Sequence record: NC_061421.1
Reading direction: 5' to 3' (one strand)
DNA: 64,000 nt
Under the pieces are notes generated by a model, which searched no databases, had not been told where the DNA came from, and saw nothing but the letters and a program-made list of their open reading frames with translations. This document shows positions 9,771-63,412 of the stretch, one piece after another. The translations under genes were made by a program, and so were the position numbers. Position 1 is the first letter of the stretch, and each line of letters starts with the position of its first letter.

Positions 9771-12416
9771 ATGAGTGATTTCGGGAATAAGATCAGCGAA
9801 TTAAATCCGTTGAGCGCAGGAAATATGGCGGGGGAAATTCCGTTAAGTTTAACACTGTCTAGCGGTACTTTGGCAACCAATAAAATCACGTTGAGCCAAC
9901 TCAGAGATCTTTTTGACTTCGATAGCGCATACAGCAGCGTAGAAGAAGGGATCGCTGCGACGGTAGAAAACCAAATGTTCTACGTTTACGTAGACAATAA
10001 TAAATTATCGGTCAATGAATACATCCGAACTAGCATTGGTGCGAACGCAGTCATCGGTAAAAGCGGCACTAAGAAAATTATTTATATTCCTGAACTACTG
10101 AAGCACGTCAAAGTGCAAGTAGAGAGTTTTACTGCACTGCGGGAGTTTAAACCGTGGTGGGAAGGTCAGGTAGTTTATCTGAAAGGGTACTACTCGGAGA
10201 GTACATCGGGGAGTGGTGACTTCATTGGTCATTTAGGAACAGCAACGGATGACGGCGGTGTCATCGCAGCGGGGTCGGGGTATTACTGGGAACGAAATGA
10301 CAGTAAGAATGTTATAGATGCTCAATGGTTTGGCGTTACAGCCGATGGCACCAATAAAGGGACTGAAATTAGTCGTGCACTCGATTTCATCTCTGTTCGT
10401 GGTGGGGAATTAAAATTCCCTAATGGCGAAATAAACTGGGGTACGCTCAGGAAAGTTTTTAACTATTCCGCCACTTTGAAACCGTTCACTTTATCAGGTA
10501 ACGGAGACAGCACCGTTTTTACGTTTGACGACGTCCCGCCCCCTACGCTACAAACTGGCGCTAATTGGGTTAAAGAATCACCGTTAATATCTTTTATCGG
10601 AACTAGCGGCGACAAATTCATTCCGAAGGTAGCCCTGAAGAATTTCTCTATGGACTATTCGCGACAGAAGAATAAAGGCGGGACGGATTTAACTACGCTC
10701 TCTGTGACACATCCTACTCCATATTCACTCGGGGTCTGGGGAATTTATTTCTTCTATGCCGATAGTCCGACGATTGAAAACGTGACCCTAAACAATATTT
10801 ACGGTGATGGGGTCATCATTAGGAAGTCATTCGAGCCGACAGTAAGAAACTGTCAGTTTTATAATGTTTCCGCTGGGAATATTATTGCGAGAACCGATGG
10901 TAACATGGCATCGGATTCGAACGGTGGGGCTATTTTCTTTTGGGCTTGCGTTGGTGGTCTTATCGATAATGTAACTGCTTGGAACCAACGGACTTATCAA
11001 GTTCATGTTAACTCAACCGATAACGGTACGGACGTATTTAACACATTGTGCGGTTACATTGGTATCTGGACAGAGTACCCGTGGGATCAAAACATGACAG
11101 CTAGTTCGCCAGAGACCGCACCGCCAAGAATGACTTCTATAATTTCATCAAGTAATTTGACAAACAATTGGGACAACGAAGCCAAGGGATGTACTATTCG
11201 AAATTGTACTGTTTATGGATATACTATCGGGATTAAATCGGAAGGATTTAGCGAAACCAATATTGTCAACAATATGGTTCTTAATTGCTACCTTCCTATT
11301 TTCCCGGCCAGTACTCGTGCAACTGTAGCCGATAATTTTACAGATATGCTCTACTGCGACAACCGGACTTGTCCGCAAGGTGGTTATCAAAGTATCCGTG
11401 GTCATCTTGTCTGCCATAACTACAGTACCGTCGATGACGGTGCGCGCAGAGGCGTTGAGTTCAGAGGTAATAAGTGCTATTGCGTATCGTACCCTGCTTT
11501 TAGGAGTAACCGGTCAGGATCGCTCTTCGTCGGCAATATGTTCAGGTTCGCACGTGGCGCGGCTGTTGCGATCGATACGACTATTAGTACTCTTGTTAAA
11601 GGCGTCATTGTTAGAGATAACACGTTTTTCTTTGATAGTACAATCAGCAGTACCGTGACTTCTAATATTTCTTATCATGACGGGCTTGTATTCAGTGGCA
11701 ACCGATTTGTCAATAAGTCGACCTCGTTAGTTACGATCGCATTTAGAAATAATTCAAAGAATGTTAAAATAGAAAATAACTTCTTTGAGGGTTGGTTTTT
11801 TGTAGCGTTACAGTGTACGGGTATTTTCGATAAGAACACTGTAGATGTTCAAAATCAACCGATTGCTAACAGTTATCATTTAGGTAATGTTTTTCAGGCC
11901 ACGGCGAGGGCGGTAATATCAAGGAATGAATTCAGAATTAACTCTTCTGCGACTAGTTCGCAAATTGTAGTTTCTTCAGATAATAGCGTATTTGAACGTA
12001 ATATTATACATGTACAAAATACGGGAACACCGACCTTGAATGGTTTAGTTTCATCTGAGTCCAGCGGAGCAAACCAAATTTTTGAAGGTAATTTGGTTAC
12101 GCAGAACCCGTTTAATACCGCCCTGTTCTACTTGAATACCCCGCACGCACCAACGTTTATCGGAAATGTCAATAGCGGTAATCTGATTTATATTTTCGGC
12201 ACCACTATTTATTCTCCTATAACTCTCGAACGTAACAGATGCACAGGGATATTTACTGCCCTAGCAACAGAAAAAAATACAGGTGTCAATCTTTCGTCTA
12301 AAGTGACGCCCTATGTTGGAATGAAGATGTATTACATTCTCCCTAATGCTAATGGAGCAGAAGGGGAAATATATACTGCGCAAGGATGGAAAACATTTGG
12401 TAGTATTACTGCTTAA
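9771..12416 (+). CDS. Tailspike / polysaccharide depolymerase (pectin-lyase-like beta-helix)
   Basis: Anchor and neck modules, WFGVTADG, long Asn/Gly/Ser-rich beta-helix pattern, C-terminal GWKTFG; start moved to MSDFG. Confidence 0.8.
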   Translation: MSDFGNKISELNPLSAGNMAGEIPLSLTLSSGTLATNKITLSQLRDLFDFDSAYSSVEEGIAATVENQMFYVYVDNNKLSVNEYIRTSIGANAVIGKSGTKKIIYIPELLKHVKVQVESFTALREFKPWWEGQVVYLKGYYSESTSGSGDFIGHLGTATDDGGVIAAGSGYYWERNDSKNVIDAQWFGVTADGTNKGTEISRALDFISVRGGELKFPNGEINWGTLRKVFNYSATLKPFTLSGNGDSTVFTFDDVPPPTLQTGANWVKESPLISFIGTSGDKFIPKVALKNFSMDYSRQKNKGGTDLTTLSVTHPTPYSLGVWGIYFFYADSPTIENVTLNNIYGDGVIIRKSFEPTVRNCQFYNVSAGNIIARTDGNMASDSNGGAIFFWACVGGLIDNVTAWNQRTYQVHVNSTDNGTDVFNTLCGYIGIWTEYPWDQNMTASSPETAPPRMTSIISSSNLTNNWDNEAKGCTIRNCTVYGYTIGIKSEGFSETNIVNNMVLNCYLPIFPASTRATVADNFTDMLYCDNRTCPQGGYQSIRGHLVCHNYSTVDDGARRGVEFRGNKCYCVSYPAFRSNRSGSLFVGNMFRFARGAAVAIDTTISTLVKGVIVRDNTFFFDSTISSTVTSNISYHDGLVFSGNRFVNKSTSLVTIAFRNNSKNVKIENNFFEGWFFVALQCTGIFDKNTVDVQNQPIANSYHLGNVFQATARAVISRNEFRINSSATSSQIVVSSDNSVFERNIIHVQNTGTPTLNGLVSSESSGANQIFEGNLVTQNPFNTALFYLNTPHAPTFIGNVNSGNLIYIFGTTIYSPITLERNRCTGIFTALATEKNTGVNLSSKVTPYVGMKMYYILPNANGAEGEIYTAQGWKTFGSITA

Positions 12417-15224: not shown

Positions 15225-15692
15225 TTATTTGGCGAGAATAGATTTACCTTTATATTCCAACATCAGCCCAGCTAAACCGATCCGTGTTTCCGCTTCCGTT
15301 ACCATTGCCTCTAAAGCAGACATCAGAGTCCGTTCTTTCGCTTTCAAGAATACCGGCTCGAAACCATCCGAGAATACATTATCGAGACTGATGCGTACCC
15401 AAACTTCACCGGTATCTTTCATGGCCACTTCCATTTCCCCGAAATCTTCACAGCGGTTCGGCGCCAAGTCTTTAAGAAACAGAATTGTTTTTCCGCACTC
15501 GTCTCCGACGATCCAGTTACTTTCGTCGAAATTCGTTAATTCTTCAAGGAGTTCGCCGGCATGATAAACAATGATAGCGTTAATACTTTCACGCATTTCA
15601 GTCACTGAGTCAGCGAATTTCTTTTCGCGTTCTTCACGAGTGTAGTTCAGAGAAGAGAAGACATTAGCAACAGCATCTTTGATCAGAGACAT
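15225..15692 (-). CDS. Hypothetical acidic protein, first gene of operon
   Basis: 155-aa ORF with biased codon use. Confidence 0.7.
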   Translation of the reverse strand: MSLIKDAVANVFSSLNYTREEREKKFADSVTEMRESINAIIVYHAGELLEELTNFDESNWIVGDECGKTILFLKDLAPNRCEDFGEMEVAMKDTGEVWVRISLDNVFSDGFEPVFLKAKERTLMSALEAMVTEAETRIGLAGLMLEYKGKSILAK

Positions 15693-15827
15693 GTTAGGAT
15701 TCCTTAATTGGTTTAGTTAAACGGAAAGGTCTTTCCTTTCCTTATTCACTCTGGCTATATATACTTTAAAAAAAGTGCATTTCGATTCTTATGAATTTTC
15801 AACTGACTAATAAAGGCTGAGCGCTTT

Positions 15828-17288
15828 ATGGACGTAATTATCGATGGTAAACGTTATATCCCGGAAGAACACGCTTCCCGTAAAATCGGTATCGCGATCT
15901 CCACGCGTAATCGACACGACGTACTAAAGAAAACCCTCGCTGAGCACGCCAAGTTCCTCCCCCCTAATGCGGTAATCTATATTGTCGATGATGGTTCGGA
16001 TACCCCGGTACAAGCTCCTGATTGGGCCGCTGTTCATCGTCATGAAAAAAGTGAAGGGATAGTAGCCGTTAAGAATACATCGCTTCGCCTTTTGATTGAC
16101 GCCGGCTGCGAGCATTTGTATCTGTGGGACGACGACGCCTACCCGATTGCTGATAACTGGTGGGTTCCGTATATGTTGTCACCAGAACCCCATCTCGGAT
16201 ATCAGTTTAAAGACCTAGCGGGAAAAAGAAAAATAAATGACGTTATTGAAGTGTATAATGACGGGAAACATTTTGCACTTTCAGGGCAGCGTGGAGTTAT
16301 GCTCTATTACCACAAATCGGCGATTGATAAAGTCGGTGGTTTCGATCCAATTTATCAACGAGGGATGTATGAGCACGTCGACCTTGCCCTGCGTATTCAT
16401 AACGCAGGTTTAACCACATTCCCGTTTGGTGACGTCGTCGGAAGTAACCGACTTATCCATTCCATGGACGAATACGAAGAGGTTGCGCGGTCTGTTCCGC
16501 CAGCGGATCGTCAACAGCAGGTGGAAAGAAACGTTAAGATTTATACGGCGCGCCGTAAGAGCCAGTACGCCGGTTATGCGCCTTATCGCAAAGCCCGTCG
16601 GGTAGTCGCCACCGCGCTATTAACCGCTTGTACTGACCCACAACGTCAGAATACTCACATGGCAGCAAGTAGTGCTCTACTACAGACGTGGGCAGAGAGT
16701 ATTAAAGGTGCAGAGAAGATTGTTTTTGCAGATCAGCTATCCGATATGTCTGGTGTGACAATAATCAAAGTACCAGAGGTAAGAAATCTTTCCCCGTATT
16801 TTCTCCGCTGGCTGCACATTTACCAGTGGCTGCGTGATAACCCAGATGTTACCCAAATATGGTGTACAGACGGCACCGATGTCAAAATGCTCAAAGAACC
16901 TTGGGATGAAATGGAACCGGGGAAAGTTTATGTCGGAAATGAACATACGACATACGCCAACCCTTGGTTTGACAAAGTCAATTACCAGAAGTATTTGAAA
17001 AACTTTATTACCGCCAACAAAAATGAACAGGTGGTCAACGCAGGGTTAATCGGCGGTTCCAGAGAAGACGTTATGCAACTGGCTCACGGAATGATTGCCC
17101 AAGTGTGGAAAATGAAATCCGAGATCTTCTGGCGAGAAGAACTCGCCCCTGAGTCAGTGACGGACATGGTTATGTTCGGTATCGAAGCGAAGAAGTTTGG
17201 CGATCGATTAGTGCACGGCCCTATTGTCAACACCGTTTTTAAAGGTAACGAACACGGTAAAGATATCGCTTGGTTTGCGCATAAATGA
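15828..17288 (+). CDS. Two-domain glycosyltransferase (GT2 N-terminal plus second GT-A-like domain)
   Basis: IAISTRNR...IVDDGSD, WDDD, VGGFD...YEHVD; C-terminal half WCTDGTDV...NAGLIGG. Confidence 0.85.
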   Translation: MDVIIDGKRYIPEEHASRKIGIAISTRNRHDVLKKTLAEHAKFLPPNAVIYIVDDGSDTPVQAPDWAAVHRHEKSEGIVAVKNTSLRLLIDAGCEHLYLWDDDAYPIADNWWVPYMLSPEPHLGYQFKDLAGKRKINDVIEVYNDGKHFALSGQRGVMLYYHKSAIDKVGGFDPIYQRGMYEHVDLALRIHNAGLTTFPFGDVVGSNRLIHSMDEYEEVARSVPPADRQQQVERNVKIYTARRKSQYAGYAPYRKARRVVATALLTACTDPQRQNTHMAASSALLQTWAESIKGAEKIVFADQLSDMSGVTIIKVPEVRNLSPYFLRWLHIYQWLRDNPDVTQIWCTDGTDVKMLKEPWDEMEPGKVYVGNEHTTYANPWFDKVNYQKYLKNFITANKNEQVVNAGLIGGSREDVMQLAHGMIAQVWKMKSEIFWREELAPESVTDMVMFGIEAKKFGDRLVHGPIVNTVFKGNEHGKDIAWFAHK

Positions 17289-17306
17289 TCTTAGGAGGGG
17301 TTAAGA

Positions 17307-17897
17307 ATGAAAATTGCGGTCGTTGGCCACGTTTCAAGACTCTCTGCGATCGAAAGACTTGTTTCGGCTCTTCCGTGCGAAGTCTTTATGGACAGTGTAG
17401 GGAAAGGGGCTTTACACAATCACCTGAGGGCATTACGTTGGGCGGCAGAACAAAATGAGCGTGTAGTGATCATGGAAGATGACGCCATCCCCGTTACGTC
17501 TTTTATTGAAAAAGCAGAGAAATGGTTTTCGCTATTTCCCGATCAATTTCTTTCTTTTTATTTGGGGACGAGCCGTCCACCTCAATACCAGAAGTTAATC
17601 GATCATTCCATAGAAGACTCCAAAAAGCTCAACCGTCAATTCATTTGGTTGAACCAGTTGATTCACGGTGTCTGTTACTCCCCAGTTCCCGGGACAATTC
17701 AAGATATCGTTGATAAAATCGATATGAATAAACCAGCGGACTTCGCTATAGGTTCTGCTTGGGGTAAATCTGTCTATTACCCTATCAGGTCACTTGTAGA
17801 GCACCGTGACGGTAGATCGGTAGAGAAACACACCGATGGCAGGAAAAAATCTGGTGTGCGAGTAGCGCGCTTCCTAGACGGTAATTTACAGTACTAA
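17307..17897 (+). CDS. Glycosyltransferase (GT-A, GT25-like)
   Basis: GALHNHLRAL...VVIMEDDAIP...D...SLVEH; AGGAGG SD; co-oriented with upstream GT. Confidence 0.75.
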   Translation: MKIAVVGHVSRLSAIERLVSALPCEVFMDSVGKGALHNHLRALRWAAEQNERVVIMEDDAIPVTSFIEKAEKWFSLFPDQFLSFYLGTSRPPQYQKLIDHSIEDSKKLNRQFIWLNQLIHGVCYSPVPGTIQDIVDKIDMNKPADFAIGSAWGKSVYYPIRSLVEHRDGRSVEKHTDGRKKSGVRVARFLDGNLQY

Positions 17898-17918: not shown

Positions 17919-17949
17919 CTCCTCCCGTAGCAGAACGCTACGGGAGGAG
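17919..17949. terminator. Terminator between convergent operons
   Basis: 13-bp stem CTCCTCCCGTAGC / GCTACGGGAGGAG. Confidence 0.8.
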
Positions 17950-61893: not shown

Positions 61894-62024
61894 TAGATTA
61901 CTCCACCCCAAACAATCGCCGCCGCAAATAACCACCAACCCCAGCTATGTTCCCCGTGAAAGAAACCATAGCCTCCAATACCGATTAACACTAAACTTAA
62001 AATACCGGCCATGAAATATTTCAT
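61893..62024 (-). CDS. 43-aa two-TM membrane peptide
   Basis: Not in ORF track; MKYFMAGILSLVLIGIGGYGFFHGEHSWGWWLFAAAIVWGGVI; ATGA and TAATG overlaps on both sides. Confidence 0.7.
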   Translation of the reverse strand: MKYFMAGILSLVLIGIGGYGFFHGEHSWGWWLFAAAIVWGGVI

Positions 62025-63412
62025 ACCGACACCTCTATTTTAATCGCAGGGTGGTGTTTGTATTCCGTGAAGACGAAGTCCTCAAAGGTGAGTTCAAATA
62101 ATCCTTTCTTTGGAACGACCACCGCCGAATCGTAATAGTGCTCAGAACGAACAAAACATTCTACTGGTTTATACGGCTCACGAGTAAGCTGTAATTTCAC
62201 TTCCTCGATCTGGTTAAGGTAGATATGGACGTTAGTCAGATTACCAACCAACTGTTTTGGCGCCATCCCCAACTCATGGGCAAAGGCCAGTAACATGAAT
62301 GCGTAGAACGCCTGGTTATACGGTTCGCCGACGGGTAAGTCCACGGAACGCATTGAGTACTTAAGACTCAACCACTGCGTAGGGACATGATTCTCAGTGA
62401 GCCACTCCGCTTTACGTTCTGCCGACATCTTAGGTTGATTACAATGTTCTTCTGCGTAGCAGTCGGACATGTGATCTTCCCAGAGATCCTGGAAGTACGG
62501 GTTAGCGTTATTCGCGCACCAATCCAAACGCTCGCGCAGCGTCATCTCTTCCACGTAGAACTCTACGAGGAAATGACAGGGAGTGAGGCACGGTTTTCCG
62601 TTGATAACGTTTTCCTGCGGTGTCACCTTTACCGTCTTAGTTCGCGGTACCCCGTGACTGGCCAGAAAATCTTCGCAGTTATCGGTCTTACCGTGATCTT
62701 CCAGGCGCGGCCAGAAGATCGCATAAAGGTCCGGGCTGTGGGTTTTTAAATGTTCCCACATCTCGTCATTAGTGAGAGTAACTTCTTTCGTTTCCTCTGG
62801 CATCCAGAGTGGGTTCCACGCCGAGATGAGAATCCGGCGGGATTCTGGATTGTTCCGCAGCAGGTCTAAAACATATGCGACTTGATCAACGCCTTTCTTC
62901 TTAAGCGGGTCTTCCGAGAAGTTTCGCCAGGCGCTACCATACGGCGCATTCAGATCATTTACGTGATGTGCGATTACCGAGCGCGTACGCGGTACGTTAT
63001 GCGAATCCAACCACACGTGACCCTCTTCGACTGGGCGAATAGAGATCTTCTTACTGAAGAACTCGATGTACGCATCTTCGTTGTTTTCTTCCAGCCAACG
63101 CAAACGCTCGTAATTCTCCAACTCCACTTCCGTAGAGACGTTTTCCTTCAACCGCCACGGCGCCCAGAAATCCCCTTTCCCGTCCTCGGTGATCATCGAC
63201 TCCATATGGAGCTCACCATTAAGGATAGAACGGAACTCTCGCCAAGCCAGTTTACGAGAAACAAACTTTGTGGTGAGTAACGGGAACTCACCTTTTGATA
63301 GATCGTATTTTAATCTGGCATCAAAAATACCGATAGTCCCTGTCCCGGTACGATCGCCGCGCACTCGTCCTGTTTCCAAGACTTCCTGGAGTAATTCAAG
63401 GTATTGTTTCAT
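62021..63412 (-). CDS. thyA: Thymidylate synthase with three insertions
   Basis: DRTGTG, FPLLTTK, PYG..WR, SRRILISAWNP, PCH, RSVD...PYN, NVHIY. Confidence 0.95.
   Translation of the reverse strand: MKQYLELLQEVLETGRVRGDRTGTGTIGIFDARLKYDLSKGEFPLLTTKFVSRKLAWREFRSILNGELHMESMITEDGKGDFWAPWRLKENVSTEVELENYERLRWLEENNEDAYIEFFSKKISIRPVEEGHVWLDSHNVPRTRSVIAHHVNDLNAPYGSAWRNFSEDPLKKKGVDQVAYVLDLLRNNPESRRILISAWNPLWMPEETKEVTLTNDEMWEHLKTHSPDLYAIFWPRLEDHGKTDNCEDFLASHGVPRTKTVKVTPQENVINGKPCLTPCHFLVEFYVEEMTLRERLDWCANNANPYFQDLWEDHMSDCYAEEHCNQPKMSAERKAEWLTENHVPTQWLSLKYSMRSVDLPVGEPYNQAFYAFMLLAFAHELGMAPKQLVGNLTNVHIYLNQIEEVKLQLTREPYKPVECFVRSEHYYDSAVVVPKKGLFELTFEDFVFTEYKHHPAIKIEVSV

Follow-up and report, generated by a model that had tools for sequence, protein, structure and literature searches.

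We have analysed a 64-kb stretch of DNA (the window; record positions 124001-188000) from the 307,210-bp genome of Klebsiella phage vB_KpM_FBKp24 (phiKp24), genus Maaswegvirus. Two adjacent genes in it, gp237 and gp236, in our judgement reasonably likely form a virion-protein glycosylation cassette, with gp236 as the initiator and gp237 as an extender of two activities. Judged by sequence comparison, the three sugar-transferring domains encoded by the pair are true relatives of the virion-glycosylation enzymes of mycobacteriophages. By analogy, a sugar coat is probable for phiKp24 and for the many enterobacterial prophages that have the pair. In the literature searched, phage-encoded virion glycosylation has been described only for mycobacteriophages, and phiKp24 would extend it to another host phylum and another type of phage. 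Coordinates are those of the window unless record positions are named. The operon consists of the following elements.

15828-17288, plus strand: gp237, intact open reading frame (ORF) of 486 amino acids, RefSeq "glycosyltransferase", phrog_1579.
15879-16577, plus strand: N-terminal glycosyltransferase A-fold (GT-A) domain of gp237 (residues 18-250), GT2-like, with VDDGS at 52-57 and the metal motif DDD at 101-103.
16587-17285, plus strand: C-terminal GT-A domain of gp237 (residues 254-486), predicted fold like that of retaining GT6/GT8 enzymes, with TDGTDV at 347-352 and NAGLIGG at 404-410.
17307-17897, plus strand: gp236, intact ORF of 196 amino acids, RefSeq "glucosyltransferase", phrog_854.
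17919-17949, no strand: GC-rich hairpin of 13 bp, flanked by the convergent genes gp236 and gp235.

The two genes are separated by 18 nt and diverge from the minus-strand gene gp238 (15225-15692), and the hairpin is likely the end of the two-gene gp237-gp236 transcript. A first-pass annotation, made from the sequence alone, had described a divergent two-gene operon without transmembrane segments in a phiKZ-like phage, and it was right in all three respects. Both ORFs are intact and arranged as stated, and neither product has a membrane or hydrophobic segment (the maximum over a 19-residue Kyte-Doolittle window is about 1.0). The phiKp24 genome has an annotated PhuZ tubulin gene and several split genes of beta type for a multisubunit RNA polymerase, and its capsid protein has homologues in phiKZ, 201phi2-1, PhiPA3, Goslar and SPN3US.

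Against the PHROGs collection gp237 matches phrog_1579 with an expect value (E) of 2e-202. Among 1.8 billion cluster representatives searched, 1193 relatives came to light, and most of the best 150 of these 1193 keep the two-domain length. The alignment and the AlphaFold2 model were built on 100 relatives, and the model reached a predicted local distance difference test score (pLDDT) of 96.0. The N-terminal domain is probably an inverting enzyme. The match of gp237 itself to the Pfam GT2 family (PF00535; E 0.005, 17.2 bits) lies under the curated cut-off of 23.3; among the 100 relatives PF00535 matches 75 and PF02709 (Glyco_transf_7C) 63 at E <= 0.01. A PDB profile search with this domain led to chondroitin and heparosan synthases. 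When residues 7-250 were compared by structure, PcManGT (VIA Z 16.7) and GalNAc-T1 (16.6) were matched, with further matches to DPMS, TarP and SpsA; the matches at Z 16-17 extend over 200-226 residues with a root-mean-square deviation (rmsd) of 2.8-3.8 Å. Residues D54, D55 and D101-D103 are invariant or nearly so in the 100 relatives.

Residues 254-486 matched no Pfam or NCBIfam family. In the model their fold resembles that of retaining GT6/GT8 enzymes, a likeness that cannot by itself give the mechanism. Matched structures include BoGT6a (VIA Z 15.9 over 205 residues, rmsd 3.5 Å), the blood-group enzyme GTB (15.0), human collagen glucosyltransferase (13.9), glycogenin (13.0) and the PBCV-1 capsid glycosyltransferase A64R (12.3), and an ESM Atlas search with the domain lists clusters bearing the Pfam families GT_PLOD and Nucleotid_trans. 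D348, T350 and D351 of the first motif and N404, G406, G409 and G410 of the second are conserved in the same 100 relatives. Longer members of the gp237 family (671-723 amino acids) were considered as fusions with a gp236-like domain and proved not to be; one longer member appears to hold a second GT2-like domain.

The smaller protein, gp236, matches phrog_854 (E 1.2e-49, residues 2-187); it has no Pfam match, and sequence and profile searches of the PDB gave nothing meaningful. Its AlphaFold2 model (pLDDT 91.7) is a compact GT-A domain, and Foldseek placed nearest to it Mimivirus R655 (the top match, E 2e-6), POMGnT1, GnT-I, ppGalNAc-T2 and LH3, with a probability of 1.0 to GT-A enzymes. The EDD motif, which GnT-I also carries, is found at residues 57-59, and E57 and D59 are invariant in 37 relatives. 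The models and the fold searches confirm the three GT-A domains proposed at first sight. The motifs then named (TDGTDV, NAGLIGG and EDD) are all present, and most of their residues are invariant or nearly so in the two sets of relatives.

The nearest characterized relatives belong to phages of actinobacteria. In a BLASTP comparison gp236 aligned with gp110 of mycobacteriophage Che8 over 195 residues with 27% identity (E 6e-18), and tblastn matches of gp236 were found in Cluster F and Cluster C phages, Che9d, Gordonia phages and Myrna (gp238). The corresponding search with gp237 gave full-length matches of 44-47% identity to a 486-amino-acid transferase of several hundred Cluster F mycobacteriophages and a match of 37% identity to Myrna gp234; Che8 gp108 and gp109 showed no relation to gp237 in a direct comparison. 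Virion glycosylation in mycobacteriophages (Che8 gp108-110, Corndog gp38, Myrna) is, according to papers citing it, the subject of Freeman et al. 2023. A 2025 paper states that virion proteins of Che8, Corndog and Myrna are glycosylated, that Che8 gp110 and Corndog gp38 are transferases essential for capsid glycosylation, and that the modification shields particles against antibody binding and reduces the production of neutralising antibodies (PMC12363180). The earlier remark that some mycobacteriophages glycosylate their capsids with phage-encoded transferases agrees with this paper. Full-text searches brought up no report of virion glycosylation for phiKZ-like phages or for Enterobacterales phages with the pair. 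Glycoprotein staining was negative for ten other phages (PMC12894461), a result without relevance here, since no glycosyltransferase genes are mentioned for those phages and phiKp24 is not among the named ones.

As a separate observation, the gp236 homologue of Cluster C mycobacteriophages adjoins a gene for a PnuC-like nicotinamide riboside transporter. A parallel was noted in phiKp24 (record 200300-202366), whose genome also has PnuC, NadR, NAMPT and PRPS, none of them adjoining the transferases; it may be a coincidence.

The same pair is carried by hundreds of Enterobacterales genomes. In HK542, where its genes are gp54 and gp55, it follows Q, PR' and the lysis genes and is itself followed by an HNH gene and, across cos, by terminase, an order that recurs in FSL SP-016, one Pantoea prophage and two Enterobacter hormaechei prophages. 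The first-pass annotation had placed a very similar pair beside the packaging genes of some lambdoid enterobacterial prophages, and these genomes supply the examples. In Che8 an equivalent arrangement is located at the right end, before HNH. Cronobacter phage ENT47670 has the pair between the major tail protein and tape-measure genes, and a further prophage (L025) has it between the capsid and connector genes. In the small phages examined, the pair thus occupies late or structural gene positions.

Some of these prophages have a gene inserted between the two transferase genes. In prophage L025 (9701-9994) it encodes a protein of the Acb2/Tad1-hairpin family, a candidate anti-defence sponge. The Pantoea prophage (L023, 9679-10020) and one Enterobacter prophage (L033, 9426-10007) have an HNH_3 or AP2-type homing endonuclease gene there.

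The C-terminal ends of structural proteins were examined in genomes carrying the pair because the glycans of Che8 are attached, according to PMC12619734, to the C-termini of both capsid and tail-tube subunits. The ends are as follows.

Che8, pair present: capsid -KTGS, tail-tube -SDGS.
HK542, pair present: capsid -SSGS, tail-tube -ASGS.
FSL SP-016, pair present: capsid -GAGS.
Pantoea prophage L023, pair present: capsid -ESGS, tail-tube -ASGS.
Prophage L025, pair present: capsid -EAGS, tail-tube -AEGS, connector -CSGS.
E. hormaechei prophage L033, pair present: capsid -GAGS, tail-tube -ESGS.
E. hormaechei prophage L034, pair present: capsid -GAGS, tail-tube -AAGS.
ENT47670, pair present: capsid -ATS, tail-tube -PSS.
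HK97, pair absent: capsid -SGS, tail-tube -TIS.
HK022, pair absent: capsid -SGS, tail-tube -VTP.

Among carriers 7/8 capsid proteins and 6/7 tail-tube proteins end in -GS, counts that come from a small sample (8 carriers, with HK97 and HK022 for comparison) and ignore phylogenetic kinship; the background rate is 3 of 337 phiKp24 ORFs. The pattern departs widely from chance and agrees with the published modification site. By Pfam family or sequence the carriers' tail-tube proteins form at least four groups, and the shared ending is therefore not a matter of simple common descent. HK97 and HK022 share their capsid protein with HK542. The tail-tube proteins of HK97 and HK542 have homologous cores and different ends; the HK022 tail-tube protein is of another type. 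We tentatively propose, at somewhat below an even chance, that C-terminal -Gly-Ser-COOH (a small residue, then Ser) is the acceptor tag of a single phage glycosylation system acting on capsid, tail-tube and some other virion proteins. That system would be common to actinobacteriophages, HK97-like phages and prophages of enterobacteria and other proteobacteria, and phiKZ-like jumbo phages.

Three phiKp24 ORFs end in -GS. One of them, together with the capsid protein, drew attention as a possible acceptor.

Record 292864-293406: gp048, 180 amino acids, phrog_2935 "virion structural protein", ending ...DGFSAGS.
Record 304809-307097, minus strand: major capsid protein, ORF of 762 amino acids, ending ...NETQVTPAS.

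The gp048 gene lies between genes annotated as virion structural proteins. Its orthologue ends in -DGFGS in KpLz-2_45, which carries the pair (an indel lies just before the end), and in -FDAPAA in Moabite, which does not. For the capsid protein the ends are -VTPAS (phiKp24) and -VVPAS (KpSz_1) where the pair is present, as against -APKP (Moabite) and -TPAP (Ea277G) where it is absent. The idea that the capsid C-terminal tail as such accompanies the pair was discarded, as non-carriers have tails too and the contrast is confined to the last residue. The cryo-electron microscopy paper on phiKp24 describes its tail (Q582-S597) as missing from HK97; in hexamers the tails are twisted into a 2-nm "pore" at the centre, and in pentamers they are disordered (PMC9700779). 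Together, gp048 and the surface-exposed C-terminal loop of the capsid protein are likely candidate acceptors, a lead drawn from the comparison of ends in one lineage.

The published capsid protein has 597 amino acids, and its numbering fits the last 597 residues of the ORF, starting at a codon that is not a start codon; the remaining ~165 N-terminal residues were either cleaved off or omitted from the annotation. The exposed C-terminal tail also contains D-V-N-E-T, a sequence that fits the bacterial N-glycosylation sequon, D/E-X-N-X-S/T.

The setting of the pair in phiKp24 differs from that in the small phages: it forms a plus-strand island inside a long block of small minus-strand genes without known function, and genes for PhoH, DprA, thymidine kinase, NAMPT/PRPS and DHFR are close by. 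Other plus-strand islands of the same block include the tailspike gene gp217 and a tail-fibre-like gene. The latter and the region upstream of the operon are described by these features.

15711-15791, plus strand: conserved intergenic element of ~80 nt between gp238 and the operon, GTTTAGTTA...GGAAAGGTCTTTCC...TATATAC...TGCATTTCGATTCTTA.
9771-12416, plus strand: gp245, annotated as hypothetical, with an N-terminus like those of tail-fibre and exopolysaccharide-depolymerase proteins (phrog_4250, phrog_17640).

Within the element, a probable promoter or leader region, are the inverted repeat GGAAAG-GT-CTTTCC and a core, TATATAC-N12-TGCATTTCGATT. The 307-kb genome has exactly three full copies of it (the others at record 96609-96690 and 118268-118349). 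Each copy lies between divergent genes and precedes a plus-strand island, namely gp301, gp274 or the transferase operon. Since gp301 is annotated as "putative head structural protein", the shared sequence suggests that the pair is co-regulated with at least one gene bearing a head-protein annotation. It is the only link of the phiKp24 pair to late or morphogenesis genes; the position of the pair gives none. No sigma-70-type promoter was found upstream of the operon, and a comparison by eye revealed no motif common to this region and the regions upstream of the sheath, tail-spike and tail-fibre genes. The operon had at first been called late-oriented, a claim with strand as its sole basis; many phiKp24 virion genes are on the minus strand and virion genes occupy both strands, so that strand was rejected as a proxy for timing and the claim is not firm.

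All 11 genomic copies of the heptamer TATATAC are on the plus strand, and five of them belong to a longer motif, (T/A)AG(G/A)GTGATATATAC. Sites of the heptamer include record 58402, 69650, 85979, 99147 and 150524 (window 26524). At two checked sites the long motif lies just upstream of the start of a minus-strand gene and downstream of the preceding gene, and one of the two follows an annotated terminator. The long motif may represent a class of promoters for minus-strand blocks.

Each of the 13 close relatives of phiKp24 has the pair at the phiKp24 locus, as does a divergent metagenomic relative (L032), with identities of 64% and 48%; Moabite, Ea277G, KpHz_2 and Goslar lack it. From this distribution the pair was gained by the ancestor of the clade and then kept. 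The term "acquired cassette", used in the first-pass annotation, therefore holds for that ancestor and fails for any later time, as divergent relatives keep the same locus. The metagenomic relative, a 144-kb contig, appears to be an undescribed phage, in which the genes around the locus retain the order thymidine kinase, tail fibre, PhoH, transferase pair and NAMPT/PRPS/DHFR.

In the mechanism that we favour, soluble cytoplasmic gp236 and gp237 would build a glycan on the phage's own virion proteins before or during assembly. The first sugar would be placed by gp236 onto the exposed C-terminal tail of abundant structural proteins; it is taken as the initiating enzyme because a gp110-type enzyme is the one component common to all these systems. 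The primer would then be extended by gp237 with two different sugars or linkages, possibly in alternation. That two-activity role was assigned because gp237 combines an inverting GT2-like with a retaining GT6/GT8-like domain in the architecture of heparosan and chondroitin synthases. What we infer here is which proteins accept the glycan, in which order the enzymes act, which sugars they use and when they are expressed; the genes, folds, motifs, homologies, contexts and tag statistics given above are observed.

Several findings weigh against this proposal. In phiKp24 the pair lies outside the structural module, amid small minus-strand genes and metabolism genes. The phiKp24 capsid protein ends in -AS and not in -GS, its C-terminal tail is present, with other sequences, in relatives lacking the pair, and the contrast between carriers and non-carriers in this lineage amounts to a single evolutionary event. 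Among the small phages, ENT47670 has the pair and no -GS ends, although both of its proteins end in Ser, and the HK97-type capsid protein keeps -SGS in HK97 and HK022, which have no pair, so that the tag is not exclusive to carriers. No RNA sequencing time course of phiKp24 infection was found in the data searched, which were metagenomes only. Both phiKp24 papers are silent on gp236, gp237 and glycosylation, and the cryo-electron microscopy paper contains no mass spectrometry.

The strongest alternative, which we nevertheless regard as unlikely, is that the enzymes act on a host or other non-virion target: a host protein, an envelope precursor or a cytoplasmic oligo- or polysaccharide, for example against capsule or lipopolysaccharide synthesis or a defence system. 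The host is heavily encapsulated, the phiKp24 pair is surrounded by non-structural, metabolism-type genes, and the whole gp237 chain has a fold like the processive bifunctional polysaccharide synthases PmHS2 and K4CP. However, no membrane segment, lipid-carrier enzyme, flippase or export partner accompanies the pair, and the operons that contain it in small phages are late or morphogenesis operons. The homologous mycobacteriophage system is reported to act on virion proteins, and a host target would leave the C-terminal -GS pattern of capsid and tail proteins unexplained.

T-even glucosyltransferases and TET-associated glycosyltransferases (TAGT) are precedents for the glycosylation of phage DNA, and gp236 and gp237 might likewise sugar a hypermodified base as a means of evading restriction. 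Nucleotide-metabolism genes near the pair and weak matches to the TAGT family (PF20691; gp237 E 0.079, 16/100 relatives, best E 2.5e-5) speak for this alternative, which we consider quite improbable. The TAGT score of gp237 is 13.3 bits against a curated cut-off of 27.5, and no Tet/JBP, C5 DNA methyltransferase or hydroxymethyl-pyrimidine gene was found in the phiKp24 genome. The thymidylate synthase looks canonical: the homologue listed next scores above the ThyA equivalog cut-off and has the dUMP-type Asn, and DHFR is present.

62021-63412, minus strand: thymidylate synthase homologue, 463 amino acids, with an insertion of ~135 residues (~206-340) between two conserved halves of the fold.

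In the temperate phages of 37-47 kb that were examined, the pair sits among late or structural genes and not beside base-modification genes. The missing modified-base genes, the sub-threshold TAGT match and this placement make a DNA target unlikely. Moreover, in a phage that may form a nucleus an enzyme acting on DNA would need to be imported. The first-pass annotation had named virion proteins or DNA as the glycan's carrier; homology, the small-phage context and the -GS tag speak for the former, and the lack of modification genes speaks against the latter. We give hardly any credence to the view that the genes are carried-along morons, inactive or active in other hosts only, since both ORFs are intact with all conserved catalytic motifs and have stayed at one locus in the 13 close relatives and the divergent metagenomic one (64% and 48% identity), even though the pair is outside any recognisable phiKp24 module.

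If the virion is indeed the target, the immunogenicity of the broad-host-range phage phiKp24, and perhaps its stability and its behaviour in mucus, would hinge on a glycan coat left out of account in existing structural work, and the "pore" of twisted capsid C-termini in the published map would merit a second look. If the Gly-Ser tag is real as well, many Gram-negative phages would be glycan-coated, among them a structurally solved Klebsiella jumbo phage and phages with HK97-type capsids. The Gly-Ser rule would then serve as a simple sequence test for modified virion proteins in hundreds of enterobacterial prophages and as a possible handle for engineering glycan-coated phages.

The system described here can be set against four groups of known enzymes. 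With the TET-associated transferases it shares phage-encoded sugar transfer and a weak profile similarity, but the match stays below the family threshold and the modified-base pathway was not found in phiKp24. The transferases A64R of PBCV-1 (2p6w) and R655 (9crz) and R699 of Mimivirus are, like gp236 and gp237, virus-encoded soluble GT-A enzymes, and A64R, which matches the gp237 C-terminal domain, acts on the major capsid protein according to its PDB title; here the likeness is one of fold (10-16% identity) and the viruses are eukaryotic. PmHS2 (8viw) and K4CP (2z86) have two GT-A domains in one chain, as does gp237, whose whole chain matches these bifunctional synthases over 387 residues (VIA Z 17.1, Foldseek E 1e-12). 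The identity is nonetheless 10-16%, the packing of the domains differs (rmsd ~15 Å across both) and nothing hints at a free-polymer product or an export partner.

The mycobacteriophage system differs from ours in its host, which is Gram-negative for phiKp24, in the phage type (a phiKZ-like jumbo myovirus) and in the position of the pair, which in phiKp24 is outside the structural modules. The Che8 extension enzymes gp108 and gp109 are unrelated to gp237, and glycans have been reported for Che8, whereas the phiKp24 system is known from its genes. The similarities lie in the enzymes and in their arrangement. All are soluble GT-A enzymes, and gp236 is a full-length homologue of Che8 gp110. The gp237/gp236 pair corresponds to Myrna gp234/gp238 and to the Cluster F pair of 486 and ~200 amino acids, and the Che8 genes stand just before HNH and, across the genome end, terminase, as the pair does in HK542.

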